Assembly: GCA_946965045.2 (NCBI GenBank)
Contig: OX337228.1
Coordinates: 3,286,001 to 3,350,000 of the forward strand
DNA length: 64,000 nucleotides
Origin: Epithemia pelagica
Taxonomy: Eukaryota; Protista; Bacillariophyta
Reading direction: 5' to 3'
Part shown: one piece after another, positions 1,952 to 63,434 of the stretch
Layout: each line of letters begins with the position of its first letter
Position numbering within the stretch: position 1 is the first letter of the stretch
The notes under the pieces: generated by a model
The model's input: only the letters and a program-made list of their open reading frames with translations
Database searches by the model: none
Told to the model about the DNA's origin: nothing
Translations under genes and position numbers: made by a program

Positions 1952-2024
1952 AGTTACTTTGTTTGTACAGAATGATGTCATCCCTTCTTGAAAGTAGAGA
2001 CAATTTATCGATGTTTATTGGTCA

Positions 2025-11000: not shown

Positions 11001-11686
11001 CCTGAAACTCCTGCCGAGGATGCGTGCGGATTAGAAGACTCAGGTGACCCTGCCAACCAAACACGATGGAATAAAGACTGTTGCCCAGAAACATCGCCAC
11101 TTCCATTCATATCAGTGGATTGGGGAGCAATTACTCGAAGATGAGGAGCTGTCTCCAGTAAGTTCTTGGCATGTTGTGGATCCTCTTCGTTAACGGAAGC
11201 CTCAGCAATGGTTGGAGTCCGCAGTTGAGCCGATGATTTTAACGAAGTTCGGGGAGGATAGAAGTATGGTGCAAGACCGACGGAACTGTGAGAGGGAAAA
11301 TCAACGCGAGTTTGATCAAAGAGGGATGACTCCAATCTATTAGGTCCGATATCATCAGTCGAAGGTAGTGTTGTCCCTCGCTTTGGACTAGAGCGACCGA
11401 GCCCTCTTTTTCTTGGGTTTCTTTTATTCGTTTCAATGAAGCTTATGAGGGAAGCTGTGTCAATGTGCTCATTCCGACTGAGAACCGCAATGTCGACAAA
11501 GGAATCGTGGTAGTCGTCCCATGGGTCTGATGATGTTAGTGTGGCGTCGTCAGACGATATCGTAAAACTCGATGGACTTGACCAAGCTGCAGCAATATTT
11601 TTGCGTCGAACCTCCATGCATATTGTCTTTACAGGACTCTCGTACGTATTCGACCCGCCAGCTCCGATGCTGTTTGACACTGACAT
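2025..11686 (-). CDS. TOR: Target of rapamycin (TOR) kinase, multi-exon
   Basis: Four consecutive minus-strand ORFs joined by GT-AG introns. They encode HEAT repeats, FAT, FRB ([18 protein letters not shown]...[10 protein letters not shown]), the PIKK kinase domain ([36 protein letters not shown]) and a FATC terminus ([12 protein letters not shown]). Start chosen as ATG 11686; in-frame ATG 11695 is also possible. Confidence 0.97.
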
Positions 11687-12083
11687 AAAAACCACGGAGT
11701 TGGATGAGGCAACAACAGAAAAGGGAAAGAAACATCATCACCATGTCGAAGGTTTTTACCTGCAGAATGAACAGACGTAGACATTTTATGTTAGACGTGG
11801 AGATCTGAGCAATGTTTTAGGAGATCCAATTGCATGGAGTTTCTGTATTCTAGTAAGAGTAGATGCTAAACGTCCCGATCGCCTGCGCCATGGTCGGGTT
11901 GGGAACACATGTATCTCTGATGGGCACGGTGGTTCGTGTCTCGTCCTCGGATGGGCAATATTCTGAGCTCCTGCTTTTGAGGTAGCTCTGCTAGCTACAG
12001 TCCCATCCATCTATTCCAGAGTGCTAAGGCTCCTACGAGCCAAGGTACCAATAAAACACTCTAAATTATGCTTGGTCGGCAAT

Positions 12084-17780: not shown

Positions 17781-18308
17781 ACATGACTTAGTTCGATTAA
17801 GTATCCTTGTTTAGTTACGATATGATGTTAGTTTTGTTCGACTGAGTTCAGTGAACGATGTCGGGTAGATCGTTTAGATGGGGTCTGGGGTGGAAATTTC
17901 AACAATCATGACTGCAAAACAGACATAGTCATCTGACAATCGATCAGGAAGTACAATGACAAATTTGGACAGGGATTTGAACGTTAACTATGATAAAAAT
18001 AAGATATCAGAATATACAGAGTTGCACATTTTATGATGTGTTCAGGTCATTTTGTTGACTGTAAACCGCGCAGGGTCATAAGTCGATTAACTGTACAATT
18101 CAAAAATATATCTATTGTAATAAACAAATATCGTGATTTTCCCAACCATTAACAAATGACTTTTACAAGATGGGATATGAAGAAAAGATGGTTAAACGAA
18201 AGAAAGATTTCTCTGTTGAGTTGAAACCATCCCGTGAACTACCCTGGGGCCGATACCAACGCCTTTGCCGAGACTGCTCTGCCCCGCTCCTCTTGGATCC
18301 CGTCGCGG

Positions 18309-21300
18309 ATGACGGCGGCGCCGGAAACGGCGCGCTCCGCGGACCCGCCATGGTCATTTTCGGCGAAAACTACACGACCCATGGTGCACCCACGACCGAA
18401 ACGCCAATTCGTCCCCCAAACCACACCCAGAAGTCCCGAGACGGCCCGGGCAAGCAAGGCGAATCTTCCACTCGTCATGGAATTTCTACCTCGTCTGCGA
18501 AAAACCAAACCGAACTCACCACCGGACGGCAACCCGGCCCATGGCCGAAGCCAACAACCAGCAACAACCAAACCCACAAGGCCCAACAGGCACAACGTAC
18601 ACCCGGTCCAACACGAAATCCCCGACCCGCCGAACACCACGCAGCAACGGATCTTTTCAGACAGAGGCCACCACACCGACCAACCAGACGGCAAACCAAC
18701 AGCCGACACCATGGCCACAATACACGTCGTCTCCTCAACACTCCCTCAAGGGAACCTTAGCCACCCACCGCCGCGACGAGCTCGGTATCCAACAAGATCA
18801 ACCGCTACCCAGACAGACACCCGACTCCTACGGCCGCGTGGAGTACCGACACCAACACCAAGTCATCAACCAAATGACCAACCAAATGACCCAAAGGAAA
18901 GACAAACCACTCTCACAACTTTGGAAAACCCAGTCTTTCCCAAGTTACCAGCCTGCTCCCGCAGTCCCCAGTCCTCCGACCCGCCCACCAGCACCATGCA
19001 CGTCCACTCCAAGCCTACCCTTGGCCGCCCGCCTGCCCACCGCGGCAACAAACTCGCCCCTGCGGTGACAACCAAGCCATCTCCCACCTACAAGCCGTCC
19101 GGAAAGCCCTCGCGCAACCATTCTCCGACCATGGAACCCCCCGCCGCCGAGCAGCAACACCCCACCGACGCCACCACCATCACCCCAGAGAAGAACACCC
19201 ACAAACACCACGACGGCAGCAACCAACACACCAACACCGGCACCGAACTCTCCCATCAAACCAACCAGAAAAACGACAAAAACCAAACCAACGAAAACAC
19301 CAACAACCATAAAAATGACAAAAATCAATCCAACGACAACACCAACACCCACAAAGACGACAAACACCAAGCCAAAGACTCCGCCGGCAACCACACCCAG
19401 CCAATCCCAGCCACCCACTACAACATCGCCGCCAATACAGGGGGCGAAGACAACAAGGACTCCACCGAGACCAACCAACCCCCCACCGACGAACCCAACG
19501 ACGAAGAAAACCACAACGGGCCAGCCAACAGCAAGCCGAACAACGAAACCACCACCTCCATCCACAATCCGTACCGCAAGTCGCCAGCCCCGAAAACAAA
19601 GAAACCGCCAGCCCAAGAGCCGGCACTCTTGATCCACCTTCATGTGGCGGTGAATCACAACCCCAATCCACAGGTGGAAGCCACGCTCCCCCGCCTGACG
19701 GAAGAGTCACTCACTGAACACTTCAACCACGTGTTCCAACACCACAATAAACGAGAAGACCCAATGTGGTTGCAAGTGCATTCGATGGATTTCATCGAAA
19801 CAAAACAATCAGGACGCCCCACCGGGCGCAACCAAAACGAAAGCCCCAACCGTCCCCGAGGAGGACACACATCCACCTTCCACATGACCCTGTCGCCCGC
19901 CCCCGCCAACGACCAATTCGACACCAAAGTCTTCACGGAACAAGGGCTACGTTTTGCCCTCCAACTCTGGCATCGCCACCACCAGTCCGACTTCCTCTTC
20001 GACGAATACGGGTACCAATACATTCTCCGCCCTGGTACGGCGCAGTCAAACCCCACGGTCAACCCCCGGTACGACCAGATTCACGTTTATGTCCCAGCAT
20101 GCAACAACCGCACCAGCGACACGTTCGGCATCATCGTCGGAGTTCCAGCGATGGCGGTAAAACACCGACGCGGCTTTATGGACCTGGCCCTCGCCATCCG
20201 TGAATGCCTCTACCCCCACCTACCGAAAAAACTACAAGGCGACGACTTCTTCGACCATATTGGATGTCGAGGGGGCACCTTTAGTGGCGACCTAAAGTCC
20301 AAACAACGTGGACAGGTCCAAGTCATCTACCTAGCAGCGTCCTCACGCAGCAACTTCGAAGCCCTGCTTCGTTCCTACAACGCCTTTCGGGCATCGAACC
20401 GAGGAATGGAAATGGAATGGACAGACAACACGATCCAACTTCTTCCAATGCCAAAGAACCAAACCACCAGGACAACAACACTGGAAGCACTCAAGGATGT
20501 CGACCAATATTTTGGCGCATGCATCAAAATAAAACTTAGGCACATCAACCACGAGGCAACGGATGACGAGTGGGCACAACTTAAGGATATGGAAGAATTC
20601 GTTGCACTCTTCCCTGAGTTCTGCAACGAAGACCCCTCCCCCCAAGCGTACACATTGTATCTGCGTCGTACTCCCGACACACACCACCTGGACGGAACGA
20701 CCATTCGGCAGCACACTGGATTCCCAACCAACATGCTTCTCCCTTCGCTGGCCGCAATCGCCGCGACTCCCCCCTCCCCAGAGTCCACCACCCAACAACA
20801 AGGCAACTCAACACCGTCGAGCCACACTTCACGCCTTCTCGAGTTCACCGACCGACTCTTACGTCGGAAACCTACCAGCTGCGGAAAAACAAATCGCGCA
20901 AGCCCCCCGGGAACACCACCACCAACAAAACGAGCAGCACCAAACCACGACTCCAGCGACCACAGCGAGAAATCGGACCCACACGACGACGGTACCGATT
21001 GGCAGACGGTTATAGCCAAATCCCCACAGTTGCAGAACCCAACACACCCAGACGACGGAAAACCAAAAGCCAAAAAACGAGCAAACCAATATGACGACTT
21101 GGCCGACGAACTGTCCGACGACGACAACGTCGAAAGCAACCACAACCAAAGCCGCCACTCCAACGACGAAGACGAAGAGATGGCTGACGCCGACGAATGG
21201 GACAACCACTCCCACTCGTTGCTTACACCAGAGGACGACCACCACAACGGACAATCCGCCCCGACCGGTGATGAAATCGCAATGATCTTCTCGTACGTCC

Positions 21301-21497
21301 GAGAAAACAACCCATCCCGCCTCCCAGAAATCAGGAGGTATCTGGAAAACACAAGGTCCTTTGCAACGGACACAGACGCGCAAGATGCGTGGGAGTACGC
21401 CCAGTCGTTGGTAGAGACGGGTCCTCCCACCATCGCCGGCACCCGCACCGGCCATGTGGTCCCGCATGATACATGGGCCAAGGAGCCAAATGAGTAG
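18309..21497 (+). CDS. ORF1 of the non-LTR element (about 1060 aa; low-complexity flanks around a central globular region of unknown family)
   Basis: Open frame 18234-21497 with first ATG at 18309; its stop overlaps the ORF2 start (ATGAGTAG, 21490-21497). Confidence 0.75.
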   Translation: MTAAPETARSADPPWSFSAKTTRPMVHPRPKRQFVPQTTPRSPETARASKANLPLVMEFLPRLRKTKPNSPPDGNPAHGRSQQPATTKPTRPNRHNVHPVQHEIPDPPNTTQQRIFSDRGHHTDQPDGKPTADTMATIHVVSSTLPQGNLSHPPPRRARYPTRSTATQTDTRLLRPRGVPTPTPSHQPNDQPNDPKERQTTLTTLENPVFPKLPACSRSPQSSDPPTSTMHVHSKPTLGRPPAHRGNKLAPAVTTKPSPTYKPSGKPSRNHSPTMEPPAAEQQHPTDATTITPEKNTHKHHDGSNQHTNTGTELSHQTNQKNDKNQTNENTNNHKNDKNQSNDNTNTHKDDKHQAKDSAGNHTQPIPATHYNIAANTGGEDNKDSTETNQPPTDEPNDEENHNGPANSKPNNETTTSIHNPYRKSPAPKTKKPPAQEPALLIHLHVAVNHNPNPQVEATLPRLTEESLTEHFNHVFQHHNKREDPMWLQVHSMDFIETKQSGRPTGRNQNESPNRPRGGHTSTFHMTLSPAPANDQFDTKVFTEQGLRFALQLWHRHHQSDFLFDEYGYQYILRPGTAQSNPTVNPRYDQIHVYVPACNNRTSDTFGIIVGVPAMAVKHRRGFMDLALAIRECLYPHLPKKLQGDDFFDHIGCRGGTFSGDLKSKQRGQVQVIYLAASSRSNFEALLRSYNAFRASNRGMEMEWTDNTIQLLPMPKNQTTRTTTLEALKDVDQYFGACIKIKLRHINHEATDDEWAQLKDMEEFVALFPEFCNEDPSPQAYTLYLRRTPDTHHLDGTTIRQHTGFPTNMLLPSLAAIAATPPSPESTTQQQGNSTPSSHTSRLLEFTDRLLRRKPTSCGKTNRASPPGTPPPTKRAAPNHDSSDHSEKSDPHDDGTDWQTVIAKSPQLQNPTHPDDGKPKAKKRANQYDDLADELSDDDNVESNHNQSRHSNDEDEEMADADEWDNHSHSLLTPEDDHHNGQSAPTGDEIAMIFSYVRENNPSRLPEIRRYLENTRSFATDTDAQDAWEYAQSLVETGPPTIAGTRTGHVVPHDTWAKEPNE

Positions 21498-24400
21498 GCA
21501 GGCACAACGAATACGGCACTGCCCAGTCCCCAACTGCAACTGGCAGGTGCCAACAATCAACAGAAAACCACAGGCGGCTCTTAAAGAGCACCTCATCACC
21601 CAACACAAAGAAACGTCACCAACCGACTACATGACCCCTGAATACTGCACAACTCACAGTTTCCACATTTGCCGACACTGCGACACTCCCAGCACCATCT
21701 ACACCACACCAGGGCACCTCAAACAACATATAACAACAACACAGAGTAGGAAAAAAACAAACATCGACCTAGTTACAACCACCTACCGACATCTATCCCC
21801 ACAGGCACAAGCACACTGGAAAGAGAGCATGGCCTGGCTACACCAACTCCAACCCCAGCCGCCACCCTTTCGCCGCACCACTTGGCACAAACTCAAGCAC
21901 CCACTGCGTCGAGAGTTTTTCGTCTGTTACAACACCGTCGTTTCATGGGTACTGGAATCCACTCCGGAACTACACCCCTCTGTCCTCCGAGATGACCAAC
22001 CACCAGCATGGAACAATGACAGCACCCCGTTTTGGAAACTTCTGGTGCTGCTTGAACCCCTGCTACTCGCACCTATCAAAGGAACCGTACACAAGACACA
22101 CTCCGACGCCCTCCGCACACGAGTAAGCCTCTTCAAGAATGGCCGGATCAAAGAATTACACGAAATGACCTGGAACCCACAACCACTGCCGACCAACCAC
22201 CGGCACACCAACAGAAACAAACCAAAGAAACCGTCAAGACACCACCAACAACCACAAACGACGACACAACTGCCCCCGAACAGACTGAAGTCTGCACAAC
22301 ACGCAGCAAACGTCGGAAATTACACGACAGCGTACAAGCGCTTGATGTCGCATATGCCCACAGCAAAACTCACCCCGCCACGGATTGCAAGAATACAAGA
22401 AGAACTGTTTCCGAAACGGCGGAACCCCCCACCAGGAACAAGAGCAACAGGAACTGTGCAATCTCCGCCACCAGCAAGACAACACTTGCAACTCACCAAG
22501 GACCTTTTCGAACTGTCCTTGCGCCAAATGAAACCAGGAACCGCCTCGGGCCCGTACGCCACTTGCACGGACGCACTCGTCTCAATGGCGTTGCATAAAA
22601 CAGCAAACACACCTGACGCCACCAGACCATACTTTTCCAACCTCATGGCACTGACCCAGTTGATTGTTACGGGACAAATACCAATAACAATCCAAACACT
22701 CCTAGCGGGAAACTACTTCTTGGCCCTCCACAAAGATCTGACAAATTTGGAAAAACTCCGGCCCATAGGCATCGGAATCGCCCTGCGACGACTCGCGGCA
22801 AAAACAGCGTTAGTACACATGACTGATGCAGTACGGCCCATCCTCCTCAAGGGAGGACAATACGGAATTCAAACTCCAGGTGGCGTGGATTTCGTCGCCC
22901 AAACCACCACGGCAGCCGTGCACAAATATATCCACTGTGACAACGAAGACAACTTACCATCACGCAGCCTCCTCCTATTGGACCTTCGCAACATGTTCAA
23001 CAACACTTCAAGGACGGCAGCACGAGAAATTCTCATCAACGATCCAGCTACCGCACCACTGGTCCCCCTCTATGACTTGCTCACGGGCAAACCTTGCCAA
23101 TCATGGTTCTTCGATGCAAACCACAATCCAGATTACTTCCTCCAAGAGGAAGGATTCCCACAGGGCTGTCCTCTCAGCCCATTATTCTCATGCCTCCTTC
23201 TGTTGGCACTGACAAATCGAATCAACAAAGAACAAGCCGCGAGAGCAGCGGCAAGAAAAGCCAATGGCGATAACTATGACGACGGCAAAGGCGGCATCGC
23301 GCACTCGGCGTCGATTATGGATGATACATCCATTTGCCTACCCCACCCGGATATCGACTGGTTCATTCAACGGTTTCAACAGCTGGGTGAGCCCATGGGA
23401 ATCCAACTCAACGGCACAAAAACAAAAATTCTTACCTCAACCACACAGGTATCCCCCAAGGACAGACTGCCCGTCCACCACCAACAATGCCTCCAACAGG
23501 CACTGACCCTTCTCTGTCCCGACAACCCAAAAACACCAGAACTGACCTCAGGCACCCGCTTCCTCGGACAGCCCATCGGCTCGGCACAATTTGCCCAACA
23601 ATTTCTTCGGGAACGACTCCAAACGATGGAAACCAACCTAGACAAACTGAACCAACTAGACGACCTTCAAACACGAAGCAGTCTTTTTCGGTATTCCTTC
23701 ATACCGGCAATTCTCCACCTCCTACCTGCCGATATCGTCCAGGCCAACCCACCTGCCAACCAGAGATCCACCCTGTGGACAAGCCCAATCACGGCAACAA
23801 CCAACCGGTTGATTGCTAAGTTTGTGTCCACACTCGCCTCGTGTGTCGAAACCGACGTAACCGAACAAACAACAACCATTGCCTCCCTGCCCAACCGACT
23901 GGGAGGGCTGGGATACCACAGCGCCGCCGCAGCAGCATACCCACGTCTCATCACACAAACTGCACGAGCAATCAAACTGGCACTGTCCAAATCTTCCCCC
24001 GTCCCAACGCATCACCAACAACAATACATCAACTGGGAACATAGCGAAGACCCGGCCATCACAGCTTACCGCAAAGGTCTGTCACTATTCAATGCCGAAT
24101 ACGCCGACCAAACACTGCATGACCCCGATCGTTTCGATCATACTACCCACAACCGACAACTCAACCATGTCCTCAAAGAACATGTAATTCCCAGACTGAT
24201 CGAACTCACCGATCCCGCACAACGCGCCTTCCTCCCTTCACTCCTGTCACCGTTGACGAGTATGGCACTCCACCTCCCACGCCCAGCCGAACGATTTCGA
24301 CTCGACAATCCAATCTTTCGGACGGCAATACGTAGAAAACTCCGGCTACCACTCTTCCACACCCAAACCAACAGTCGATGCCGCTGCAGCAAGAACCTTG

Positions 24401-25320
24401 ACCAAACAGGCGACCACCTCTTTCGTTGCAACCAGGCCTCCAAAACCGCACTGTCCAACGCCGTGCGAGACACCCTTTTTGACATCCTCCGCAAAGCGGC
24501 GCCCGCCGCGAAAGCAGTTGATTCACTACATGATGTCCACCTTGAGCCACCGGGCTTGGCTCCACAACACAGCCGCAACATTTGCCCGGCCGACGTCGGC
24601 ATGCTTCTCACCCAACCACATCAAAATGACCCATTCAGATACGTAGCCATTGACGTAACAATTCCGCCTCCGCAGACCCCAACACCCCTTCCAGACCCGT
24701 CCGACCACAAATTCATCGCACAAGTTGCCTCGAGGACGCATCACGAAGCGGCAAGGGCAAAATACTGCCGTGATCCGGACACCGCCACACATTTACTCCA
24801 GAATGGTATCTACTTGATCCCCTTCACAGTGGACCACTTGGGATCGCTCGGCCACTTTGCCGACCGACTTCTCTTCAACCAAGACCACCCATTGCCCTTT
24901 TCCACAGCTGAACCGCCGGACTGGACCGATCCACACTTCGGCAAGTCTGCCGCCCGAAGCAATCGACACCCAGCCGCATACGCACTTTACCAGAACGTTG
25001 AACACGCTCCCGACAACATCCTCTCCCGAGCCAACAAAGACACCAAACTGCACTATCCAGAAGCCAACATCTACACAATCGCCCATTACGCCAAAGCCTC
25101 CCTGGCACACACCATCGTTTCGTCCCTGGCGATACATGCAAACAACCAAATTGCGGCCAACAGAGCACATACATCTGCGCAAAGATCGCGCACAACCCAG
25201 CTGGCAAACCTAGCAAGACCGAATTTCGCCCCGGTGACACCAATCTATTCCCCTCGTCCTGTCGATGATTTCCTCTCACCAGGACCGGACGCCCCACTCC
25301 TCTGCAGTTTCACCGCTTAG
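21490..25320 (+). CDS. ORF2: C2H2-like zinc fingers + reverse transcriptase + zinc knuckle + RLE endonuclease
   Basis: CPVPNC...HLITQH and CRHC...H; RPIGIG, LLDLRNMFN, GFPQGCPLSP, SIMDD, FLGQPIG; CRCSKNLDQTGDHLFRC; PAD...AIDVT...EAARAKY (PD-D/ExK-like). Confidence 0.92.
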   Translation: MSRQAQRIRHCPVPNCNWQVPTINRKPQAALKEHLITQHKETSPTDYMTPEYCTTHSFHICRHCDTPSTIYTTPGHLKQHITTTQSRKKTNIDLVTTTYRHLSPQAQAHWKESMAWLHQLQPQPPPFRRTTWHKLKHPLRREFFVCYNTVVSWVLESTPELHPSVLRDDQPPAWNNDSTPFWKLLVLLEPLLLAPIKGTVHKTHSDALRTRVSLFKNGRIKELHEMTWNPQPLPTNHRHTNRNKPKKPSRHHQQPQTTTQLPPNRLKSAQHAANVGNYTTAYKRLMSHMPTAKLTPPRIARIQEELFPKRRNPPPGTRATGTVQSPPPARQHLQLTKDLFELSLRQMKPGTASGPYATCTDALVSMALHKTANTPDATRPYFSNLMALTQLIVTGQIPITIQTLLAGNYFLALHKDLTNLEKLRPIGIGIALRRLAAKTALVHMTDAVRPILLKGGQYGIQTPGGVDFVAQTTTAAVHKYIHCDNEDNLPSRSLLLLDLRNMFNNTSRTAAREILINDPATAPLVPLYDLLTGKPCQSWFFDANHNPDYFLQEEGFPQGCPLSPLFSCLLLLALTNRINKEQAARAAARKANGDNYDDGKGGIAHSASIMDDTSICLPHPDIDWFIQRFQQLGEPMGIQLNGTKTKILTSTTQVSPKDRLPVHHQQCLQQALTLLCPDNPKTPELTSGTRFLGQPIGSAQFAQQFLRERLQTMETNLDKLNQLDDLQTRSSLFRYSFIPAILHLLPADIVQANPPANQRSTLWTSPITATTNRLIAKFVSTLASCVETDVTEQTTTIASLPNRLGGLGYHSAAAAAYPRLITQTARAIKLALSKSSPVPTHHQQQYINWEHSEDPAITAYRKGLSLFNAEYADQTLHDPDRFDHTTHNRQLNHVLKEHVIPRLIELTDPAQRAFLPSLLSPLTSMALHLPRPAERFRLDNPIFRTAIRRKLRLPLFHTQTNSRCRCSKNLDQTGDHLFRCNQASKTALSNAVRDTLFDILRKAAPAAKAVDSLHDVHLEPPGLAPQHSRNICPADVGMLLTQPHQNDPFRYVAIDVTIPPPQTPTPLPDPSDHKFIAQVASRTHHEAARAKYCRDPDTATHLLQNGIYLIPFTVDHLGSLGHFADRLLFNQDHPLPFSTAEPPDWTDPHFGKSAARSNRHPAAYALYQNVEHAPDNILSRANKDTKLHYPEANIYTIAHYAKASLAHTIVSSLAIHANNQIAANRAHTSAQRSRTTQLANLARPNFAPVTPIYSPRPVDDFLSPGPDAPLLCSFTA

Positions 25321-25387
25321 GAGTTCCATAAACCATAGCCCGTTAAATCTAAATCAAAAAAAAAAGAGGACGGCAGTCGTAACGGTA

Positions 25388-25694
25388 CTCGTCGCCTTGC
25401 AACTTGGGTCGACAAAGGGTCAAATCGCGCAAGGAGGGCGCTTGTGCCCGACGAGCCAGTAATCAGTAATCAGTAATCAGTAATCAGTAATCATGAATGG
25501 CATTGCGTTTTGAGTTTTGAGGTGTTGCGTTTGCGTTATCATTGATCTTATTAGCCATTCCCCTTGCAACTTGGAGACAAAGGGTCGAATCGCGCGAGGA
25601 GGGCGCTTGCGCCCGACGAGCCAATAATCAGTAATCAGCAATGGCATTGTGTTTTGAGGTGTTGCGTTATCATTGAACTTAGCCGTTCCATCCC
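25388..25694 (+). repeat. Degenerate tandem duplication (unit about 165 bp) with a (CAGTAAT)n heptamer array
   Basis: CCTTGCAACTTGG...GGGCGCTTG(T/C)GCCCGACGAGCCA starts at 25395 and again at about 25562; about 5.3 heptamer copies at 25457-25493 and about 2 in copy 2. Confidence 0.85.
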
Positions 25695-26190
25695 TTCTTG
25701 GTGTGAATGGAGATACACCTATCTCACCTAAGCTACTACTCCTAGAGGGGGCTGGGACTACCTACGCTATGTTGCTTCGTGTCGCATGCGCTGATGCTGC
25801 TCACCCATGCGAATCCAGGGTGAGCGATCAGCGCTGATCAGACTCGCGTGGTCACGGCGGGTCAGAGCTACATCACGCTCCCATAGGAATACTGAATACT
25901 GAACTCAGCCGTCCTTCTCCTTCGCCTTAGGCGATTCAATCATTCTCGCTCAACAGACAATGAAGAATCGGCGGAGGATTAGTCGGGGTTGATCATGACT
26001 CAATTTTTTTGGACGGCTCTCATTCACGATCATACAAGACTGGGAGCCACGGAAAACGCCATGGTCTGTACTCTGTACGCTGCTGCTGAAATGGCCCACT
26101 CGGGACTGCACTCAGTCGTCCTTGAGGTGAAGATCTTCGGTGGCAATCCGCATTGAAGCAATACTTCACACACCAACTGAAAGTTTCACC

Positions 26191-53470: not shown

Positions 53471-54654
53471 TACCTACGTGATTTGATTTGTAATTCTCGT
53501 CATCCCACATCCCAAATCCCAAGTCATGGTCCGATGTGAATTTGAAAAACTTAAAATGAGAGCCGGCGTTCGCCGCCGTGCGCGGACTCGAAACTTGTTT
53601 GGTCCCATGTACATGTATGTCTCCATTATTTTTCTATTGGGTGCGATTGGGGGGGGTACCTTTGTTCGTCCGTCATCCGAAAGGAAAAAAATTGTCTCGT
53701 ATTTTTTCCCAAAGCGCCAGCCGGGTGACATCGCCAGCCTCCCTTCGATCGCTCGAAATAGACGCGCCGGTCACGCCATGTATTGCTGGCACAAGGGCCA
53801 GGAATCGTCTCACTTTTCGAGCAACACCACAAAAGACGACCATGAGCACACCAAAAACCAAAAGAAAACCAAAAGAAAACCATCCAGCCGTACGAACGAC
53901 CACAGTGACAACTTTATGGCCAAAACCATCCACCTAGATCACAGGTGAAGGCGGAATACATCAAAGGAAGGATGACAACACGAAACATGACAATCAACCA
54001 CTGCAATGAACAATCAACCACTGCAATGATGAAGCGAAGGTTTGACAGCGTCATCATGGGGTATGTAAGCCCAGGAAGCAGGAAGCCTAAACTAGTAGTG
54101 GACTATGCTTTTATCTTTCCCATAGACAAAGTGCCAGGAGCTTGTGTTGCACCATGTGTGTGTATTTCATGGTGTGTGTGTGATGATTCCGTGAAGCTTG
54201 ATCCACTACGTAAAGAGTACTCGCTTCTGAAACAGTATAGACTTTTGAGTACAAAATGGGCTTGTAGATTTCTCTGTGCATGTCTCGTCAAGTCTCACGG
54301 CTCACGGTTCCTGTTTCCCATTCATGAGCGCAAGCGGCTACACAATACAAGCTGAGTTCAGGGAGTATGTTCCTGACGTAGACCCCTCGTAGATTTAGTA
54401 CCATAGAGTATAATCCTTAATAGCGTTCGGCCTTACTAGTGAATGAAAGTGTCCGACTCGCGACTTCCCAGAGTCTTAGGAAATATTTTTATGTGTTTTA
54501 GTGTGTTGCGTGACAGCTTCCGAACGCTGGAATTCCGTCCAAAATGATGAAAAAACGGTTGTTGTCTAACGACCATGGTGGAGGGCCTCCCAGACCCGTT
54601 GAACTGTTGCCGAGCTGCATCCGGATGCTTTAGGGTTTACTTGAACCACCCCCA

Positions 54655-57600
54655 ATGGGGCAACAGTTCAACGCATCGACATCATCCACAATGACACGAT
54701 CATCGGACTCACCTCACGCAGCACAGTCTCGGATGGAACGAAGTTTTTCTGGGAACGAGATTGTTGAACTGTTTCGGAAGCAGTGCTCACCCACCGTGTT
54801 TGGATTCTGCAACAAGTGGTTCCGAGATGTCGAGCTTGTAGGATATATGAACACTTGGTTGCCAGGATTGTCTGTGCTGGAAATGAACCGTGCTTTCCGA
54901 AGAGAAAAAAGCATTGCGATGTGTTTCGATGATGTTGAAAAGCCAAACAAGTATGGCTTCTACCGCTACAGAGATACGATCAAAAGGGAACGCTTCACAT
55001 TCTATTACATCTCTAAAGACACAACAACCCTGCCAGTGATGTTGGACGATCATCAAGAATGGCTGGAGGCTGCAGCCGAGAATGTGATTCGGCGGTCGGG
55101 ACGAGCGAAGCCAACGAAGCGAAGGAACGAAGAGTCACCAGGGTTGCGTGAAGGCACGCTAAATACATCCAAGCAAGCAAGAAACACTTCAACTCCACCA
55201 GCAATCAAGAGCACTGCAACGCAGCAACATGGTCAACCGCCACAAATTGGAGACAGCCCTACCGAAATGCAAACGTCACCACCTCACGACAACACAAATC
55301 AGGTGCTTGTTGGAGCAAGCCAACATCCTGAATTGGCCACAGACGAAATCGGCCATGACCATCCACAGAGTTTGCCGATTGGTTTTTCAGTTTTCGAGAG
55401 TGAGATGATCCAAGGTCTATCGCAACAAATGGAAAGCGCCTTTTTTGATGAGCCAAGGAACCGTAGGCTCTTTGCCGGCAAATGCGATTCTCCAGGATCG
55501 TCAAAACGAAATCTTGAGCGATGGATAGAAACCCTTGAAAGGGCCATTTCCAACGTGGAGGCACTTCTGAATGTGGTTAACAAGGGAGACATCTTCCCCC
55601 TCAACCAGGAACAGCAACAGAGGGTACTGCTCAAGGCAACGTATTTACAACTTTCTTATAAGATAGCGTTGCTTGATATGCCACACGGTCGTACATGGCT
55701 GAACTGCATAAGCGAAGCCATTAGCAAAATGGAACAGATTTATGGTGAAAAAGTAAAAAAACATCCCAAGACCATTGCTCGTTTTCACAGGTACTTTCGG
55801 GAAGACGACAGTTTCCCTCATCCCAACTACCACGTTCATATTGGGAAAGAGCCATCGCCCGTCTTATTCGTTCACATACCTGAAGCAAAGGTAAAGTTTG
55901 AATGCTGGGCAAAGGAAAACCTGAGCACTCTTACAACAGAGTCTGCTCTAATGTACCTGAGGACAACATTGCTTCCGGATATGCATGCCATGATCGTACA
56001 AGAGTGCATGGATACGAATGCAACGCCAGTATCGTACGAGGCCTTCTTGGCATCGATGAAGCTTTCCACCATTTCGCAAAGCACAGCGTGGCGATGTATT
56101 GCTGCTGCAGGGTTTGTGTTCAAGGAACACACGAAAACATACTTCACTGATCGACACGAAAATGCTGAGAATGTTGCCCACAGAGCTGCTTTTGTCAAGA
56201 AGTACTTTAAGTGGGAAGAGCTGTCGTATCGGTGGGTGCAGCTCCCTACCGAGGATGCAATCAAACTTGAAAACGAAGGGAATGCGGGCAAGGAGAAGCT
56301 CTTGCCAAACAGCTTTGTATTTGAGTACACTGATGTAACAACAGGCAAGCAGATGCGGGAGTACCATGTTGATGCCTTCCCAAGCGAATTTGAACGGTAC
56401 ATCAAACCAGAAAACACAATTCACAATGGAAACTTGTCACACAGGTTTCCCTCCGACCGCAAACCTGTCATCCTCATCGGCCAGGACGAATCGATCTACA
56501 AGCAGTTTTCCTTCTCGTCTAAGGCATGGTACACTAAAGATGGCGCAACTAAAATGCTGCCAAAGGATGATGGACATGGGATGATGATCAGCGCTTTTGT
56601 AAGCCGATCATGGGGCTTCCTTATGAACGGAAACCCGTTGCTTGCTGCGAGTCTATTTCGGATTAATGAACTCCGTCTACATGCGACACACAACAAATAC
56701 GTCTCTACCGAGGCTGCAGTGAACCTCAATGGTCACACTGCCAAGACTCCAATTACCAATGCCCAACCGTTCACTCGCTTTTTTGAATACGGAGCAGATA
56801 AAGAGGGATATTGGAATTATGAATACATGGCCTTGCAGTTGGAGGATATTGTCGATTGCCTCGTGGTCATGTTCCCCGCCCATGACTTTGTCTTTTTGTT
56901 CGACCAAAGCAGTGGTCATGGAAAACAACAATCCGATGGGTTAAATGCTCTGAACATGAATAACGACTGGGGAGGAGCTGTTCCCAGCATGCGGGACACA
57001 CAAATTATTGATCAAGCTTGCCTTGGCCCGTACAACCATGACGACAAACTACGAGTTGGTGACGTACAACACCTCGTCTATCAGGAGAACGATCGTGGTC
57101 CAGTTGCTAAAAAAGGCCATCGTCTCAATGACGCGCAGCGTGTCGCATCGAAGAATACACACCGAACTGGTAGAAAGAAAAAGCGCAACCTCACAAAGAA
57201 GGAGCTCATGGCAAAACTTGTCCGGGTCATGGGACCTGGAATGCAACGTTCATTTCAATCGAAAAATGCTGGTGAACTACAGGACCTTTGTAAACGCTCC
57301 AACATTGCAACGGTGATTGAAGATGATGTGATCGAGGAAGGCTGGATGAATGCTGCAAAAGGGCTCTTTCAAGTGTTATGGGAGCGGGGGTGGATAGACC
57401 CTAACAACATGATCAAGTACGTCAAGACAACCAGAGATGCATGGTTGGAAGCGGATAAGAAGACTGTGAAAGAAGCCTATCAGGCGGACTACAAAAAGTA
57501 CTCTATGGTTCATCTGATGAGCGAATGCTCCGATTTCAAGAACGAAAAATCTGCAATGGAGAAGCTGGCGGAAGACTTGTCTGAACGACATCGTTGCAGG

Positions 57601-57996
57601 ATCGAGATTCTCGTATCGACCAAGTATCACTGTGAAATGGCCGGTGAGGGGATCGAGTATGGCTGGGGTTACTCAAAAAAAGTCTTTCGTGCTTTCTCAC
57701 TGAATGAGAAGAAAGACAAAGCTGCCTTTTTACGATGTTTGACAGCGAGCCTGAAGAAAACAACACCCAAAATCATGCGGAAAATGTCAGCAAAGGCACG
57801 TCGCTATATGCTCGCGTACTTGTTATACGATCAAAATTCCAACAACAGAGACTATGCAGCTGCGGGCCTCTCGTATGCCAAAATTGAAAAGATGTCAAAA
57901 GCAATCAAGTGTCACCGATCCGCCTTCGACCAAGATCATGGCTTCATCTCACGTCTCTGGAGAGAAACGCAAGGATCTGGTGCAGTAGAAACCTGA
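54655..57996 (+). CDS. Intact 1113-aa DDE transposase related to the IS630/Tc1/mariner superfamily
   Basis: HTH-like ISQSTAWRCI..AGF...YFTDRHE; IGQDES (D1), FLFDQSSGH (D2), KGLFQVLWERG, KYHCEMAGEGIEYGWGYSK (E). No TIRs found. Confidence 0.85.
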   Translation: MGQQFNASTSSTMTRSSDSPHAAQSRMERSFSGNEIVELFRKQCSPTVFGFCNKWFRDVELVGYMNTWLPGLSVLEMNRAFRREKSIAMCFDDVEKPNKYGFYRYRDTIKRERFTFYYISKDTTTLPVMLDDHQEWLEAAAENVIRRSGRAKPTKRRNEESPGLREGTLNTSKQARNTSTPPAIKSTATQQHGQPPQIGDSPTEMQTSPPHDNTNQVLVGASQHPELATDEIGHDHPQSLPIGFSVFESEMIQGLSQQMESAFFDEPRNRRLFAGKCDSPGSSKRNLERWIETLERAISNVEALLNVVNKGDIFPLNQEQQQRVLLKATYLQLSYKIALLDMPHGRTWLNCISEAISKMEQIYGEKVKKHPKTIARFHRYFREDDSFPHPNYHVHIGKEPSPVLFVHIPEAKVKFECWAKENLSTLTTESALMYLRTTLLPDMHAMIVQECMDTNATPVSYEAFLASMKLSTISQSTAWRCIAAAGFVFKEHTKTYFTDRHENAENVAHRAAFVKKYFKWEELSYRWVQLPTEDAIKLENEGNAGKEKLLPNSFVFEYTDVTTGKQMREYHVDAFPSEFERYIKPENTIHNGNLSHRFPSDRKPVILIGQDESIYKQFSFSSKAWYTKDGATKMLPKDDGHGMMISAFVSRSWGFLMNGNPLLAASLFRINELRLHATHNKYVSTEAAVNLNGHTAKTPITNAQPFTRFFEYGADKEGYWNYEYMALQLEDIVDCLVVMFPAHDFVFLFDQSSGHGKQQSDGLNALNMNNDWGGAVPSMRDTQIIDQACLGPYNHDDKLRVGDVQHLVYQENDRGPVAKKGHRLNDAQRVASKNTHRTGRKKKRNLTKKELMAKLVRVMGPGMQRSFQSKNAGELQDLCKRSNIATVIEDDVIEEGWMNAAKGLFQVLWERGWIDPNNMIKYVKTTRDAWLEADKKTVKEAYQADYKKYSMVHLMSECSDFKNEKSAMEKLAEDLSERHRCRIEILVSTKYHCEMAGEGIEYGWGYSKKVFRAFSLNEKKDKAAFLRCLTASLKKTTPKIMRKMSAKARRYMLAYLLYDQNSNNRDYAAAGLSYAKIEKMSKAIKCHRSAFDQDHGFISRLWRETQGSGAVET

Positions 57997-58407
57997 TCTA
58001 ATCTCCATTTATCATCAAAATGCATGTAACTTAACTATTTATAACAGCAATCCATTTTATTGAATGTATTTCTTGTCAGTTATTGGTATCAATGATCACT
58101 TCCGTGTTGCGTGCTCGTGTTGCGTGTTGGATTATCAGTTTGTAAGTACCTCGAAAATGTGAGAGAGCGAGAAAATGGACGATTTTCGGAGCAGACCTCG
58201 CGCAAAACACGCCTCCCTCTCCGAAAACGCGCACGCATCGCAAAACTGGCACGCAAATCCTTAAGTAACTCAGCCCACATACCAAAACTTCACCGTTTTT
58301 TAGTATGTGAGCTCAAGATTTTTTTTTGGAATGTGAGCTGAGGGCTGAGGAGAATGCTGCGTTTCGTGTTTCTTGTGTTTCGTGTTTCGAGTTTTTGCGT
58401 TTCGACC

Positions 58408-61257
58408 ATGGGGAAACCAAGCCCTAAGAAACAGTATTCAAAAGCAGGCGCTCAAAAACGAGACAGCATGAGTGACAAAGGAAATCTTGACGCTCTTATA
58501 CTTGCAATAGATGCAGCGGAAGAGCAGTCAGCCAAAGCAGCAGCGGCGCCCGAAGCAGCAGCAGCCGCAGCACCCGAAGCAGCAGCAACAGACGAAGCGA
58601 CAACAACAAAGCACCATCGGTTTCTTTCGGATCAAGACTTTGCCGAAGTGAAGGATAAAAAGCTTGCAGATGTTCGGCGTGGCCATCCAGAGAAGGACCA
58701 CAGCAAACAGTATTCGGAAACTCAAATGCGGCAGCTCCTCATCGATACGCGCACAGAGGACTACAAGAAAGGCATCGAGGAAGTGGAGAAACTCCCTTCT
58801 CGTTCTGGACGGGATCCAATCAGGACTTTCTCCGAAGGCCTCAAGACGCTCTCCAAGATCAAAGACAGTGCTGTACTTGCCTGTGCTATGGGAGAGTATG
58901 TCTCACGGAAGATTTCGGCCACTTTTTCGGTCCAAGAAGCTCCAATTCGGAAGCCCGGTTCTGGCTTGTCAAAGGGGAAGATTGTGCCACTTTCGAGTGG
59001 AATGGGTCTCCCTGTCAAGAAGAACAGAAAACATACCTTCCTGATCGGCAAGCATGTCGGTTACACATTTGCGAACAATCCGGTAGTCAAGATCTACCTT
59101 GGAAAAGTGCTTCTGTTTGAGGTGAAGGAGTCAAAACTCCCAGGCGCCGGGTTTGGCGTTTTTGCAGTTCGGACAATCAAAGATGGTGAAGTGATTGGTG
59201 CGTACACGGGAAACGACGTCACGTCTCGGACAGTTGTACCCAACGAGTACGCGATTCAGTTCGGACGTGACAATCGAAGGCTTCAAGCAGACAACGACGA
59301 TCACTTCGGCATGGGGCTGCACTTAATCAACGACCACCTACACCATCGGTACGGTACAGACAATCCACCGGATGAATCGGATGATCATTACAACGTGAGA
59401 ATCATGCCGAATCTTCTAGTCAAGGCAATCAAGCCGATCGAAAAGGGCGACGAGCTGTCTTTGTTTTATAACCTTTCGGACGAATCGCCGACGTCCTCCG
59501 AACAGGTTATCCGACCGTCGACGAAAGGTGACGACGACGAAGACGAGGGAAAGAAACGCGGTCGACCCAGTGATGAAAATGAAGACGACGGGAAAAAAAC
59601 AAAGAAGCCTGTCTTAACTTCTCCTTCTACTGTTTTCCGTCCAGTTGCTACTGTTGCTCGTCCTCCTTCTCCGCCTCCTCCGCAATACGTTTCTGAGCAC
59701 TACAATTCGCCCCCTCAGCTGCCGCCGCATTATCCTCCGCAATATTATCACCATCCTCCGCCGCAGTACAATTATCCTCCGCCGCAGTACAATTACCCTC
59801 CGCCGCAGTACAATCATCATCCTCCGCCGCATTATCCTTATCCTCCGCCGCATTATCCTCATCCTCCGACGAGTCATCCTCCGCCGCAGTACCATGGACA
59901 TCCTCCGTCCTACAATCAACCCAACTATGGAGGTTACGGGGGGACTCTACCTTCATCGCTCCATCATCAGCAGCAACAACAACGCACGACCCAGCCGGTC
60001 GAAGGCTCACCCCACCTCCTTCCAAGCAATCCCATCCCACCTGCAGCACAAGCTCAACCCGTGCTCCTTCCCAGCAGTCCCGTCCTACCTGCAGCACAAG
60101 CTCAACCCGCCACTCAAGCCAATCCCAGCCCTAGTACTGGAATGTTCGTACCAGTGGTAATGGCAGAAGATGACACGGATAGTATTTTTGAGGAGATGGA
60201 AGCGATCGATGCGAAAGCGAAGGAGAATGAGCGTTTCGAGAAAATGAAGTTGTTACATAGAGAATTGCGCTCGAAGTATTTCAAATGGCTGTACGATATT
60301 GAAAACAAAATGTATCGAGGATATTTTTTGACAACTCCGCCAGATCTCCTCGAAATGTTGGAGAATGCGTGGTACAGCACAGGCTTGGACCAGAAAGGAA
60401 AGGGCAAATTTTTCAAATCTGTTCAAGACTACACACCAAATTTGTTGATGGCAATGATGGAACATGAGGGAATGGTGTCCAACATTCGGTACTTCGGCCA
60501 CGTTAACCCCGAACATGCTGCAAAGGTCACGGCCAATTTCAAGCAGCTGCTTGCCTCAGCTCTCTATGGGATGAACTACGCAAAAGATGATTCATTTGCA
60601 GACCAAATCAACATTCACCTTTCGTTCATGAAGACCACAGAGGCAAAAGTTCAAGAACCTCACATCGACTTCTTGTTCCAGAGCGTAACAGGGAACATGT
60701 CCGAAGGTCCCAAAACGCCCTCCGGGAAGCAACCAATCAAAAAGACTCGGAGAGCGAATGCAGATCTGCCACTCCGGGAACGCATGCCTTTTATTGTTTT
60801 CATGCCCCTGGCGGAGGAGGGTATGTCCGTTGAATTGTGGAGTTTCCGCAGTGAGAAGCACAAGGATTATATGAACGAGCTGGGTAAAGTGGTACATATC
60901 CCATATGGCACGTTTCTCCTCGTTCGAGGAGATACTGTCCATGCTGGTGGCTTTAAGACTGGGGAGATGGGGAATCCACGTGCACATTTCTACGTGTACC
61001 AAGGAAAAGATGGGACCGTTCACGATCCCATGCCAAAGAACACCTACAACCTTCCTTCTGGAGAAAGCAGGCTTTCCGACTACTACTTCCATGACAAAGA
61101 CATCCCTGGTGTTCGCCGAAGTGGGCTCGTTGGGGTTAAGCTTTGGGTCGGGGACAAGCGTGTTTGCGTCCTAAGTGACAATCCTCGTAAGGTGCTTGTG
61201 GCCGCGAATTATAAACCTGGTAAGAAGATCGCGAGCAAAGAAGCCGATCAAACTTAG
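58408..61257 (+). CDS. Intronless 949-aa protein: SET domain + Pro/Tyr/His repeats + 2OG-Fe(II) dioxygenase-like domain
   Basis: SET (about 59110-59472): SKLPGAGFGVFA...GEVIGAYTG...HLIND...KGDELSLFY. DSBH (about 60650-61000): QEPHIDF...FIVFMPL...GTFLLVRGDTVHAGG...RAHFY. Confidence 0.8.
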   Translation: MGKPSPKKQYSKAGAQKRDSMSDKGNLDALILAIDAAEEQSAKAAAAPEAAAAAAPEAAATDEATTTKHHRFLSDQDFAEVKDKKLADVRRGHPEKDHSKQYSETQMRQLLIDTRTEDYKKGIEEVEKLPSRSGRDPIRTFSEGLKTLSKIKDSAVLACAMGEYVSRKISATFSVQEAPIRKPGSGLSKGKIVPLSSGMGLPVKKNRKHTFLIGKHVGYTFANNPVVKIYLGKVLLFEVKESKLPGAGFGVFAVRTIKDGEVIGAYTGNDVTSRTVVPNEYAIQFGRDNRRLQADNDDHFGMGLHLINDHLHHRYGTDNPPDESDDHYNVRIMPNLLVKAIKPIEKGDELSLFYNLSDESPTSSEQVIRPSTKGDDDEDEGKKRGRPSDENEDDGKKTKKPVLTSPSTVFRPVATVARPPSPPPPQYVSEHYNSPPQLPPHYPPQYYHHPPPQYNYPPPQYNYPPPQYNHHPPPHYPYPPPHYPHPPTSHPPPQYHGHPPSYNQPNYGGYGGTLPSSLHHQQQQQRTTQPVEGSPHLLPSNPIPPAAQAQPVLLPSSPVLPAAQAQPATQANPSPSTGMFVPVVMAEDDTDSIFEEMEAIDAKAKENERFEKMKLLHRELRSKYFKWLYDIENKMYRGYFLTTPPDLLEMLENAWYSTGLDQKGKGKFFKSVQDYTPNLLMAMMEHEGMVSNIRYFGHVNPEHAAKVTANFKQLLASALYGMNYAKDDSFADQINIHLSFMKTTEAKVQEPHIDFLFQSVTGNMSEGPKTPSGKQPIKKTRRANADLPLRERMPFIVFMPLAEEGMSVELWSFRSEKHKDYMNELGKVVHIPYGTFLLVRGDTVHAGGFKTGEMGNPRAHFYVYQGKDGTVHDPMPKNTYNLPSGESRLSDYYFHDKDIPGVRRSGLVGVKLWVGDKRVCVLSDNPRKVLVAANYKPGKKIASKEADQT

Positions 61258-61783: not shown

Positions 61784-62690
61784 CTAGTACGCCTCGTCCT
61801 CATGATCCAAGTAATCGGGACCAAAAAGCCCGTTTTGCTGCGTACCGATGAAGTCTTCTTGGGTCTCGAGAAATCCATCATCGGCATACGAATCAATGGA
61901 TGTCCGGTATGCACGGGAAGGATTGCTAAAGAACAAAGGAGGAGACGACGGGATGTTTTCTCCCAATGCCAGCGACTCATTCAAAGTCTGGCGAGGGTCT
62001 GTCGCTCCACTTTCCTTCACCTGTTCCTCAGCAATCCGACGCTGGAAAGCATGCTTCTGGGAGGGGGTCAGTGCGAAAGCTCGAGACGCCACCTTCGGGG
62101 AAGAAGTTACTTTCTTCGGGGTCACATAAGACTCTGGAGTCTTGTTCTCGACGTCGTCCTCCTTCTTGATCTCCTTCTCGGGCTTGCTGTCGGGCTTGTT
62201 GTCGGGCTTGCTGTTGGGTTTGGTGTCTGTGGCAGCAGAGGGCGCGTCGTGAGAAAGGGAGACTCAAAACCAACAATGAACAATCAAACTTACCTTCTTT
62301 GCCGACAGCCTCGATCGCAAGGAGCTCTGCCGCGATATCCGACAGGTTAGCGCATTCGACGTCCTTGTTGCTGACGAAGAACACTGGGATACCATCTTCA
62401 TCCCCAATGGTGAGTTGCCACTGTTTTGCGCGCTCGTGCCACGACGAAGGACCCTCAAGGTTGAAGGTCACATGCTTCTTTGTCGAAGCGGGAGACTTCG
62501 TCGTCGTCGTCTTCTTCTTCTTCGACGTTTTGTTGTCCACGGCCGTCTTTGTCTTCATTTTCTTGTTTGCCTTGTTTCCCTTGTTTCCCTTGTCGGAGGG
62601 AAATGCGGTTGTGGAGGGAGCTGCGGCGGAGTCCTCCTGCTCCTTCTTCGCAGACTCAGCTCGTTTGGTAGCACTACGCGTCTGGCGCAT
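61784..62690 (-). CDS. Hypothetical 279-aa K/E-rich protein, 2 exons (intron 62227-62293)
   Basis: GTAAGT...CACAG intron joins ORF 62028-62780 (from ATG 62690) in frame to ORF 61784-62125. Confidence 0.65.
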
Positions 62691-62861
62691 CGTTGGAAAG
62701 TGAGAACACAATAGGGATTCGTTCGTTTGATTGTTGTGTTTGTTTGTTTGATTGTTGCCCGCTCTCCGTTCTTGTGTCATCTAGGGAATCCCCCCGCGCT
62801 CATTCGTGAACAATATCGGCGCGCGCCACAAAATCAACTTGCAGCATGAAGCAACTTCCGA

Positions 62862-63434
62862 ATGACCCGCCGTGCAATGGAACAATCAAACAGAGACGAC
62901 AGGAAGAGGCAAGGAAGAAGAAACAAGATGACCAACATGAGGACGAAGTTCGAGTTCAACGAAGAGGATGGCCGTGAGGGTGGTGCTGGTCTCCCGTTCA
63001 AGTCGTGCTTTTATGCCAGCGATGTTTGCGCGCTCATCGGGCCCATGTCGAGAAACAAGGACACTGGCCACAACATCGTCGACCGTGGCCATCTGCTTGT
63101 GCAGCGGGAGCTTGCGACCGACTACCTACGGATTGCAGTCTTTGACCGGGATGCAACAAGCGAGCATGAGGAACCAGCGTTGGTTGTTCCAGTTGGGTTC
63201 ATTGCTCTGTCGCACCTGGACCAGGTCTCTGGAAAGACGAGCAAGAACGGACCTCCCATGGGATGCATCCGCCTCTACACACGCTGCTCCATCAACCCTA
63301 AAGCCTGCATGGAACCCCAGGTCGTTACAATCTACATGGGAAGCAAGGATATGGATCGCTTCAACATTTCGCTTGGTGCGATGATGCTCAAGCACCCGCT
63401 TCAAAATCTCTTCTTTAATCATCAACAAGCCTAG
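62862..63434 (+). CDS. Hypothetical 190-aa protein, divergent from the preceding gene
   Basis: ATG-to-stop ORF with a beta-rich globular-looking composition; 171-bp spacer to the divergent ATG containing CGGCGCGCGCC. Confidence 0.55.
   Translation: MTRRAMEQSNRDDRKRQGRRNKMTNMRTKFEFNEEDGREGGAGLPFKSCFYASDVCALIGPMSRNKDTGHNIVDRGHLLVQRELATDYLRIAVFDRDATSEHEEPALVVPVGFIALSHLDQVSGKTSKNGPPMGCIRLYTRCSINPKACMEPQVVTIYMGSKDMDRFNISLGAMMLKHPLQNLFFNHQQA

Follow-up and report, generated by a model that had tools for sequence, protein, structure and literature searches.

Introduction

Transposons that carry epigenetic enzymes of their own are rare and mostly uncharacterised, with VANC in Arabidopsis as one example. 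SET histone-methyltransferase genes have been reported on HarbingerS and MuDR elements of Phytophthora (Kojima & Jurka, Repbase Reports 2014, cited in PMC12730594), and TET/JBP dioxygenase genes are found on fungal DNA transposons of the KDZ and other lineages (PMC12730594). Fusions of a JmjC oxygenase with a SET domain are also on record, as host proteins (PMC2938197). Here we describe a gene of the diatom Epithemia pelagica, ORF2 (open reading frame 2), that encodes a SET domain fused to a 2-oxoglutarate (2OG)-Fe(II) oxygenase domain and belongs to a DNA transposon. The gene occupies positions 58408-61257, on the forward strand, of a 64,000-nucleotide stretch of contig OX337228.1 (GenBank assembly GCA_946965045.2, positions 3,286,001 to 3,350,000). 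This stretch, the window, was analysed as a whole, and coordinates given without a prefix refer to it.

The locus shares features with each of these systems and differs from all of them. As described in the paper that cites them, the Phytophthora HarbingerS and MuDR elements are likewise stramenopile terminal inverted repeat (TIR) transposons with a SET gene beside the transposase, and their presumed role is to manipulate their own chromatin; they differ from the elements reported here, where the carriers are Tc1/mariner-like, with a TA target duplication, and piggyBac-like, and where SET is fused to an oxygenase. The fungal elements resemble ours in that transposons of several unrelated lineages carry a 2OG-Fe(II) dioxygenase as an accessory gene, which is thought to counter epigenetic silencing. 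However, the oxygenase described here is not of the TET/JBP type but is nearest to PhyH and prolyl 4-hydroxylase (P4H) enzymes, is fused to SET, and resides in a diatom. In human SETMAR (Metnase), a SET methyltransferase is tied to a mariner-type transposase, Hsmar1, and Metnase is also the best structural match of the transposase core of our element. Yet SETMAR is a single host fusion with a domesticated transposase, whereas our element is mobile and multi-copy, encodes SET and transposase in separate genes, and adds an oxygenase domain to the SET protein. In the literature searched, which did not cover Repbase Reports, we found no fusion of SET with a classical 2OG oxygenase on a transposon, and no such cassette in two transposon superfamilies.

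Results

ORF2 is the second gene of a recently active transposon

ORF2 lies within an autonomous TIR DNA transposon of ~9.72 kb on the forward strand, which was delimited by alignment of its copies. The element starts at 54346, runs to the last position of the window (64000) and overruns it by 64 bp, ending at window-equivalent 64064 (G000:C1:3340346-3350064), with the right end read in L021:1-64. Six further copies align end to end with 54346-64064 at 93-99.6% identity and have unrelated flanks. The left TIR, 34 nt long and starting with CAAGCTGAGTTCAG, occupies 54348-54381 and matches the right TIR, at window-equivalent 64029-64062, at 31 of 34 positions. Outside the repeats stand the dinucleotides TA, at 54346-54347 and at window-equivalent 64063-64064, and TA was found on both sides of every copy read. 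The two flanks of the window copy, joined by a single TA, occur 34 times in the genome, compared with no occurrence of a reversed control pattern. Therefore, these 34 empty sites identify the TA as a target-site duplication.

Genome-wide six-frame searches revealed at least 25 linked loci, and in each of them the SET-oxygenase gene is the neighbour of the transposase gene and shares its strand. Many of these linked loci have intact ORFs, five have identical transposase scores, and ORF2 is intact or near-intact in at least 20 genome copies. Two of the copies, A and B, show 99.57% identity across 9.7 kb, and a difference of only 0.43% indicates that the family was recently active. The ~9.7-kb transposon is autonomous, was active recently, moves by cut-and-paste, and has ORF2 as its second gene. 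A preliminary description of this DNA had suggested that the gene is borne by a transposon and had proposed that its co-occurrence with the transposase at other loci be checked; the adjacency at 25 or more loci bears out the suggestion and does not fit the alternative of a host gene present once and without a link to the transposase. Spread of a host gene family by segmental duplication was also considered and rejected, with the boundaries of the copies exact, their flanks unrelated, and empty sites in existence.

The first gene of the element, ORF1 (54655-57996, forward strand), encodes a protein of 1113 aa. Searches of Pfam, NCBIfam and PDB sequences gave nothing significant for ORF1, and no transposase profile matched. 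The protein contains the motifs GQDES, FLFDQSSGH and HCEMAGEGIEYGWG, and the blocks that are invariant among its homologues (GQDES, FLFDxSSGH and HCExAGEGIEYxWG..K) resemble the three catalytic blocks of IS630/Tc1 DDE_3 (DE.., D....H and ..NPIE..W...K). D132, D271 and E522, in the numbering of a 581-aa piece of ORF1, are invariant in 26 homologues. In all, 68 homologues were found, nearly all of them unnamed, including proteins from Fragilaria crotonensis and Thalassiosira exigua, and neighbours of ORF1 in a protein atlas carry PF13358. An AlphaFold (AF2) model of residues 480-1060 (56092-57834), with a mean predicted local distance difference test (pLDDT) score of 87.2, has an RNase H-fold core that aligns in VIA-align with the transposase domain of Metnase (Z 15.2, root-mean-square deviation 2.6 Å, 189 of 201 chain residues aligned), Mos1 (Z 15.1) and Sleeping Beauty (Z 13.6), compared with Z of 10.2 or less for retroviral integrases.

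The model also accounts for an unusual distance between the catalytic residues. In classical Tc1/mariner families ~34-41 aa separate the second Asp from the third acidic residue. ORF1 lacks this short spacing: D271 and E522, assigned by motif and secondary structure, are ~251 aa apart because a folded insertion of ~250 aa lies between them. We conclude from the predicted fold and the invariant residues that ORF1 is a transposase with a Tc1/mariner-like DDE core and an unusually long D-to-E spacing. The element resembles IS630-Tc1-mariner transposons in its TA duplication, its short TIRs and a predicted RNase H-fold core most like Mos1/Sleeping Beauty, and differs from them in the 1113-aa length of its transposase, the ~250 aa between second Asp and Glu, the lack of a Pfam profile match, and the size of the element, 9.7 kb with extra ORFs.

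ORF2 encodes a SET domain and a 2OG oxygenase domain

The reading frame of ORF2 is open without a break from 58354 to 61257 on the forward strand. The ATG at 58408, which gives a protein of 949 aa, is the likely start because MGKP also begins the sister proteins, and it lies 411 bp beyond the stop of ORF1 (57996) on the same strand. The assignment of the protein as a SET-oxygenase fusion draws on this open frame, a Pfam match, conserved residues, and an AF2 model. The uninterrupted frame, its distance from the upstream ORF and the identity of that ORF as a transposase had all been put forward in the preliminary description; the first two are as given there, and the third is borne out by structure despite the missing Pfam match. 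The SET motifs, the Pro/Tyr repeats and the iron-binding residues that it listed are likewise present, the last at exactly the positions given, as detailed below.

The SET domain comprises aa 248-355 (59149-59472) and matches Pfam SET (PF00856) with 27.6 bits against a cut-off of 22.4, over the whole of the profile (positions 1-105 of 105). Its motifs are GAGFGVFA, AYTG, LIND and GDELSLFY, so that GxG, YxG, ELxxFY with its Tyr, and the Asn of motif III are kept, while the His of motif III is replaced by Asp and a post-SET Cys cluster is absent. Four transposon-borne SET proteins, 24-47% identical, share as invariant features the last Gly of motif I, GE.(I/L)G.Y.G, MG.H..ND, and EL...YNL with the Tyr. 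A profile of the transposon SET domains matches the PR/SET domain of MECOM and the SET domain of EZH2 at E ~5e-5. Against MECOM, EZH2, NSD2 and MLL the matches are all weak and about equal, and the target lysine is therefore not predictable from them.

A low-complexity linker of ~200 aa joins the two domains. It contains a Pro/Tyr-rich 21-nt tandem array at 59728-59868, with 6.6 copies of the 7-aa unit YPPPQYN. In the translation, the basic motif KKRGRP is found at aa 382-387 (59551-59568); we take this patch to resemble the RGRP core of an AT-hook, and it may serve in DNA binding or nuclear targeting. A homologue search with the whole of ORF2 was swamped by the linker and returned only the self-match, and a search with the oxygenase half gave 3 matches.

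The C-terminal part of ORF2 holds a double-stranded beta-helix 2OG-Fe(II) dioxygenase domain (60250-61065), recognised by its predicted fold and invariant catalytic residues. An HxD motif (HID) is found at 60661-60669, the distal His (in VHAGG) at 60940-60942, and at 60979-60981 an Arg that is a putative 2OG ligand. When 1.84 billion representatives were searched exhaustively with phmmer, 235 relatives of the domain emerged, 68 of which were aligned. In this alignment, numbered on a 360-aa piece (60175-61254), Q160, H163, D165, P211, W222, H256 and G258 are invariant, among them the HxD and the distal His, and R269, H271 and Y273 are nearly invariant. The signature is thus an HxD...H triad with an Arg 13 residues past the distal His. 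The catalytic residues are kept in six intact aligned copies and in a version borne by a piggyBac-like element, described below.

Searches of Pfam (E up to 10, with no match to PhyH, PF05721), NCBIfam and PDB sequences found nothing significant for the oxygenase domain, and Pfam oxygenase profiles matched none of the 68 homologues. The identity of the domain is assigned on conserved residues and predicted fold since no profile matches. An AF2 model built on the homologue alignment (pLDDT 84.7, predicted template modelling score 0.83) was compared with known structures. The top Foldseek matches in the PDB were all Fe/2OG dioxygenases, with E down to 1.5e-6, and in VIA-align against 48,161 representative chains the best 50 were all 2OG oxygenases, with Z of 9.2-12.4. 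AsqJ (Z 12.4), Pseudomonas P4H (11.6) and KanJ (11.5) ranked high, AndA and EasH scored ~11, and PHD-type hydroxylases were also among the best 50. AsqJ, KanJ, AndA, EasH and SnoK, which are among the top structural matches, we take to be PhyH-type enzymes, and in the protein atlas PhyH clusters make up 25 of the 30 named neighbours of the domain. The model shares with PhyH/P4H-type enzymes (AsqJ, 6k0e; KanJ, 7cl2; FtmOx1; Pseudomonas P4H, 4iw3; PHD2) the double-stranded beta-helix, the HxD...H motif, and the Arg ~13 residues past the His on the next strand, with Z of 11-12.4 over 174-199 residues and a sequence identity of only 7-15%. It differs from them in having no Pfam PhyH or 2OG-FeII_Oxy match, in its fusion to SET, and in two additions, a long helical extension at the N-terminus and a hairpin at the C-terminus. 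Judged by the model, the C-terminal domain is a 2OG-Fe(II) dioxygenase whose nearest relatives are PhyH/P4H-type enzymes. Both domains had been proposed on motifs and were to be put to profile searches: the SET domain passes by its Pfam profile, and the oxygenase stands by fold and catalytic residues, without a Pfam family.

In a viral structure library, the oxygenase model matched 2OG oxygenases of giant viruses and cyanophages. A tblastn search of phages with the oxygenase domain found nothing, and a direct tie to cyanophage dioxygenases (PMC2938197) is therefore unsupported at the sequence level.

SET genes are found in sister families and on a piggyBac-like carrier

The species' ENA assembly contains two sister mariner-like families, with transposases 38-44% identical to ORF1. 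The termini of our element, TA-CAAGCTGG, also bound these families, at L045:8302-16671 and L044:9621-16595, and open contig L087. In both L044 and L045 the gene order is transposase, SET-only gene, and a homologue of ORF4, a further ORF of the element described below. The SET-only genes encode 316-408 aa and match Pfam SET with 21.1 and 25.7 bits. A SET gene is found at the same position in all three transposase lineages, at 38-44% identity between transposases.

The genome also contains diverged SET-oxygenase paralogues, with 42-49% identity, and by coordinates a piggyBac-like transposase lies 2.5-4 kb away, head-to-head, in 11 of 11 such loci. In L053, the SET gene (8792-9961) and the oxygenase gene (9992-11569) are head-to-head with the transposase, which matches PF13843 (DDE_Tnp_1_7) only through its middle ORF piece of 160 aa, with 35 bits (cut-off 22.4); the other pieces have no Pfam match. 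In several copies the transposase of this carrier is broken at the same places into three open pieces, a pattern suggestive of introns. The SET-oxygenase pair and the transposase are enclosed by a 12.2-kb element, L053:744-12901, whose inverted ends of ~1.2 kb or more (744-3198 and 11714-12901) consist of 193-bp tandem units, more of them on the left. A TTAA target duplication was not seen in L053, where CTAT stands on both sides as a 4-bp duplication in the one copy read.

In a phylogenetic tree that places the oxygenase domain among 50 homologues, the versions from mariner-like subfamilies A and E and from the piggyBac-like element form one clade with a Shimodaira-Hasegawa-like approximate likelihood ratio test value of 99. 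This clade is nested among standalone proteins, which elsewhere are ordinary genes; several are MMETSP transcripts, and the PGK/WD40/TPR synteny of one, P0006, is conserved in three samples. Subfamilies A (58408-61257) and E (L031/L032, at G000:C3:3246330-3249263) are mosaics. Their N-terminal 400 aa, with the SET half, are ~99-100% identical, with a synonymous divergence (dS) of 0.004, whereas their oxygenase halves are ~70% identical, with a nonsynonymous divergence (dN) of 0.158, dS of 0.357, a ratio of 0.44, and the catalytic residues all kept. The linker has diverged along with the oxygenase half. This mosaic points to recombination between transposon lineages inside the gene.

Together, the data argue for a single fusion event, transfer between mariner-like and piggyBac-like elements, recombination between lineages, and purifying selection on both domains. 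ORF2 is a long-standing transposon gene and not a stray host gene, because SET genes stand at the same position in sister families, a piggyBac-like carrier exists, and the transposon-borne oxygenases form a single clade.

A standalone oxygenase paralogue with 40% identity is present in this genome at G000:C1:6216217-6217137, as an open frame of 394 aa that has no neighbouring SET match. It could be the host-type source of the captured domain.

Further features of the element

The element holds three or four ORFs beyond the transposase. ORF4 (62862-63434, forward strand; 190 aa) is 40-47% identical to ORFs at the same position in the sister elements (L044:15856-16392 and L045:15956-16453) and has an invariant motif, NVVDRGH...QRE..TDYLR, across three transposon families. 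Pfam gave no match to it. ORF4 is probably a third functional transposon protein. The ORF3 region (61784-62780, reverse strand) consists of overlapping Lys-rich ORFs of 113 and 250 aa; the sister families have an ORF at the same position, and similarity to the L044 counterparts is weak.

A subterminal CGTAGATTT motif near both ends (54382-54400 and L021:6-20) lies on the same strand at each, as a direct and not an inverted repeat, and may be a binding site for the transposase. The element itself is inserted into another dispersed repeat (53639-54345 and L021:65-203), and in the genome at least 34 copies of this insertion site are uninterrupted. The copy on C11 has the same flanks as the window copy, which implies either duplication of the composite or two separate insertions into the site.

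At G000:C9:1912824-1931488 there are four tandem copies, ~5.7 kb apart, of an internally deleted transposase in which residues 1-307 are joined to 612-846. The open frame of 584 aa is 97-99% identical to ORF1, and the array is a deletion derivative of the transposase that has been amplified in tandem. Elsewhere in the window, positions 18001-26000 have a GC content of 0.52-0.55 against ~0.47, a GC skew of -0.23 to -0.35, and a positive AT skew.

Discussion

A possible function for ORF2

ORF2 is most likely a long-kept tool of the transposon for modifying chromatin. The explanation that we favour, with some reserve, is that this long-standing transposon gene encodes a nuclear, chromatin-directed module of two enzymes that favours the element. 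In this mechanism, the SET half would transfer methyl groups from S-adenosylmethionine (SAM) to a lysine of a protein, with a histone tail as the most plausible site. The PhyH/P4H-like half, with Fe(II), 2-oxoglutarate and O2, would hydroxylate or oxidise another site in that substrate or its complex. The flexible linker of Pro/Tyr heptads, with its AT-hook-like patch, would join the halves and hold the protein on chromatin. Overall the element would gain, in that its copies stay expressible, or transposition and repair remain efficient, where the host would otherwise silence the chromatin.

Several observations weigh against this explanation. Motif III of the SET domain is ND rather than NH, with His replaced by Asp, in all four transposon families, a variant that could alter SAM binding or catalysis, and the SET-only families have a degenerate first GxG motif. 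The oxygenase domain belongs to no curated family, and its best structural matches are mostly small-molecule enzymes (AsqJ, KanJ, AndA and FtmOx1), so that a substrate other than chromatin is possible. The ratio dN/dS among young copies is 0.5-1.0, based on few differences and hardly informative. No SET or oxygenase gene was found beside the transposase relatives in Fragilaria crotonensis or in four metagenome contigs, most of them short; an N-terminal SET domain was found in 0 of 150 oxygenase relatives; and 32 metagenome loci with oxygenase relatives had no SET or transposase gene nearby. The association is therefore documented in this species only.

A further-reaching proposal, conceivable but doubtful in our judgement, is that the fusion is a portable chromatin-reprogramming cassette exchanged among transposon superfamilies, and that its oxygenase is the first of a new class of 2OG enzymes that modify proteins or nucleic acids in tandem with lysine methylation. 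If so, the oxygenase would, for example, hydroxylate or oxidise the methylated lysine itself or a histone residue beside it, and the elements would escape the repressive histone and DNA methylation that silences diatom transposons.

Alternatively, ORF2 could act in transposition and repair: the SET domain would mark chromatin at breaks and the oxygenase would modify a repair or chromatin factor, improving integration or the repair of excision sites, and not countering silencing. Both carriers, mariner-like and piggyBac-like, are DDE cut-and-paste elements that leave double-strand breaks, and the best structural match of the transposase core is the transposase domain of Metnase. The SET domain of SETMAR, as outlined in PMC2847698, is a histone H3 lysine 36 methylase that enhances repair by end joining. 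However, SETMAR arose when a host SET gene was fused to a dead transposon, and is no transposon tool. The SET domain of ORF2 is also not specifically close to the SETMAR/NSD type, as its profile matches are weak and similar throughout. We regard a role as a repair cofactor as unlikely.

The preliminary description had instead read the protein as a writer joined to an eraser or oxidiser that could modify chromatin or counter silencing. In the eraser version, the oxygenase would demethylate methyl-lysine or methylated DNA/RNA, and a repressive mark would be removed as an activating mark is written. Such a reading would suit an HxD...H...R oxygenase fused to a methyltransferase, and JmjC-SET fusions do occur in nature (PMC2938197). 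The AlkB-type chains ALKBH1 (Z 10.7), AlkB (10.2), FTO (9.5) and ALKBH3 (9.2) score within ~2-3 units of the top value of 12.4, and in these model comparisons the AlkB family appears as ties, not structurally separable from other oxygenases. In contrast, the 50 best structural matches of the oxygenase model include no chain of the JmjC or TET/JBP type, and the Pfam profiles JmjC, TET_JBP, AlkB and 2OG-FeII_Oxy_2 match neither the ORF2 protein nor the 68 homologues; JmjC or TET identity was rejected on these grounds. The predominance of PhyH among the named atlas neighbours also speaks against demethylation, and we know of no lysine demethylase of the PhyH/P4H type. With the oxygenase nearest to PhyH/P4H-type enzymes, the eraser half of the earlier reading is not supported, and we consider a writer-eraser pair improbable.

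That ORF2 is a functionless passenger, made of host SET and oxygenase genes captured by chance (transduplication) and merely copied along, is very hard to credit: standalone oxygenase homologues that are ordinary host genes elsewhere, such as P0006 with its synteny, the standalone 40%-identity paralogue at C1:6216217-6217137, and dN/dS near 0.6-1 among young copies would fit it, but ORFs are intact in at least 20 copies, the catalytic residues of both domains are conserved across four transposon families at 24-47% identity, the SET gene keeps its position in three transposase lineages, the fusion has moved between two transposon superfamilies and is still intact, and dN/dS is 0.44 for the diverged oxygenase halves.

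Implications for transposons and their hosts

That the fusion has stayed intact in a diatom, on young elements that are present in many copies and belong to two unrelated superfamilies, points to selection acting on the transposon itself. ORF1 widens the range of Tc1/mariner transposases, combining a mariner-like core and a TA duplication with an insertion of ~250 aa. The oxygenase half brings to light an uncharacterised family of oxygenases that has at least 235 relatives in data from marine eukaryotes; its transposon-borne members are physically joined to a lysine methyltransferase. The element also offers a testable handle on how DNA transposons meet chromatin silencing or break repair in a major group of marine algae.

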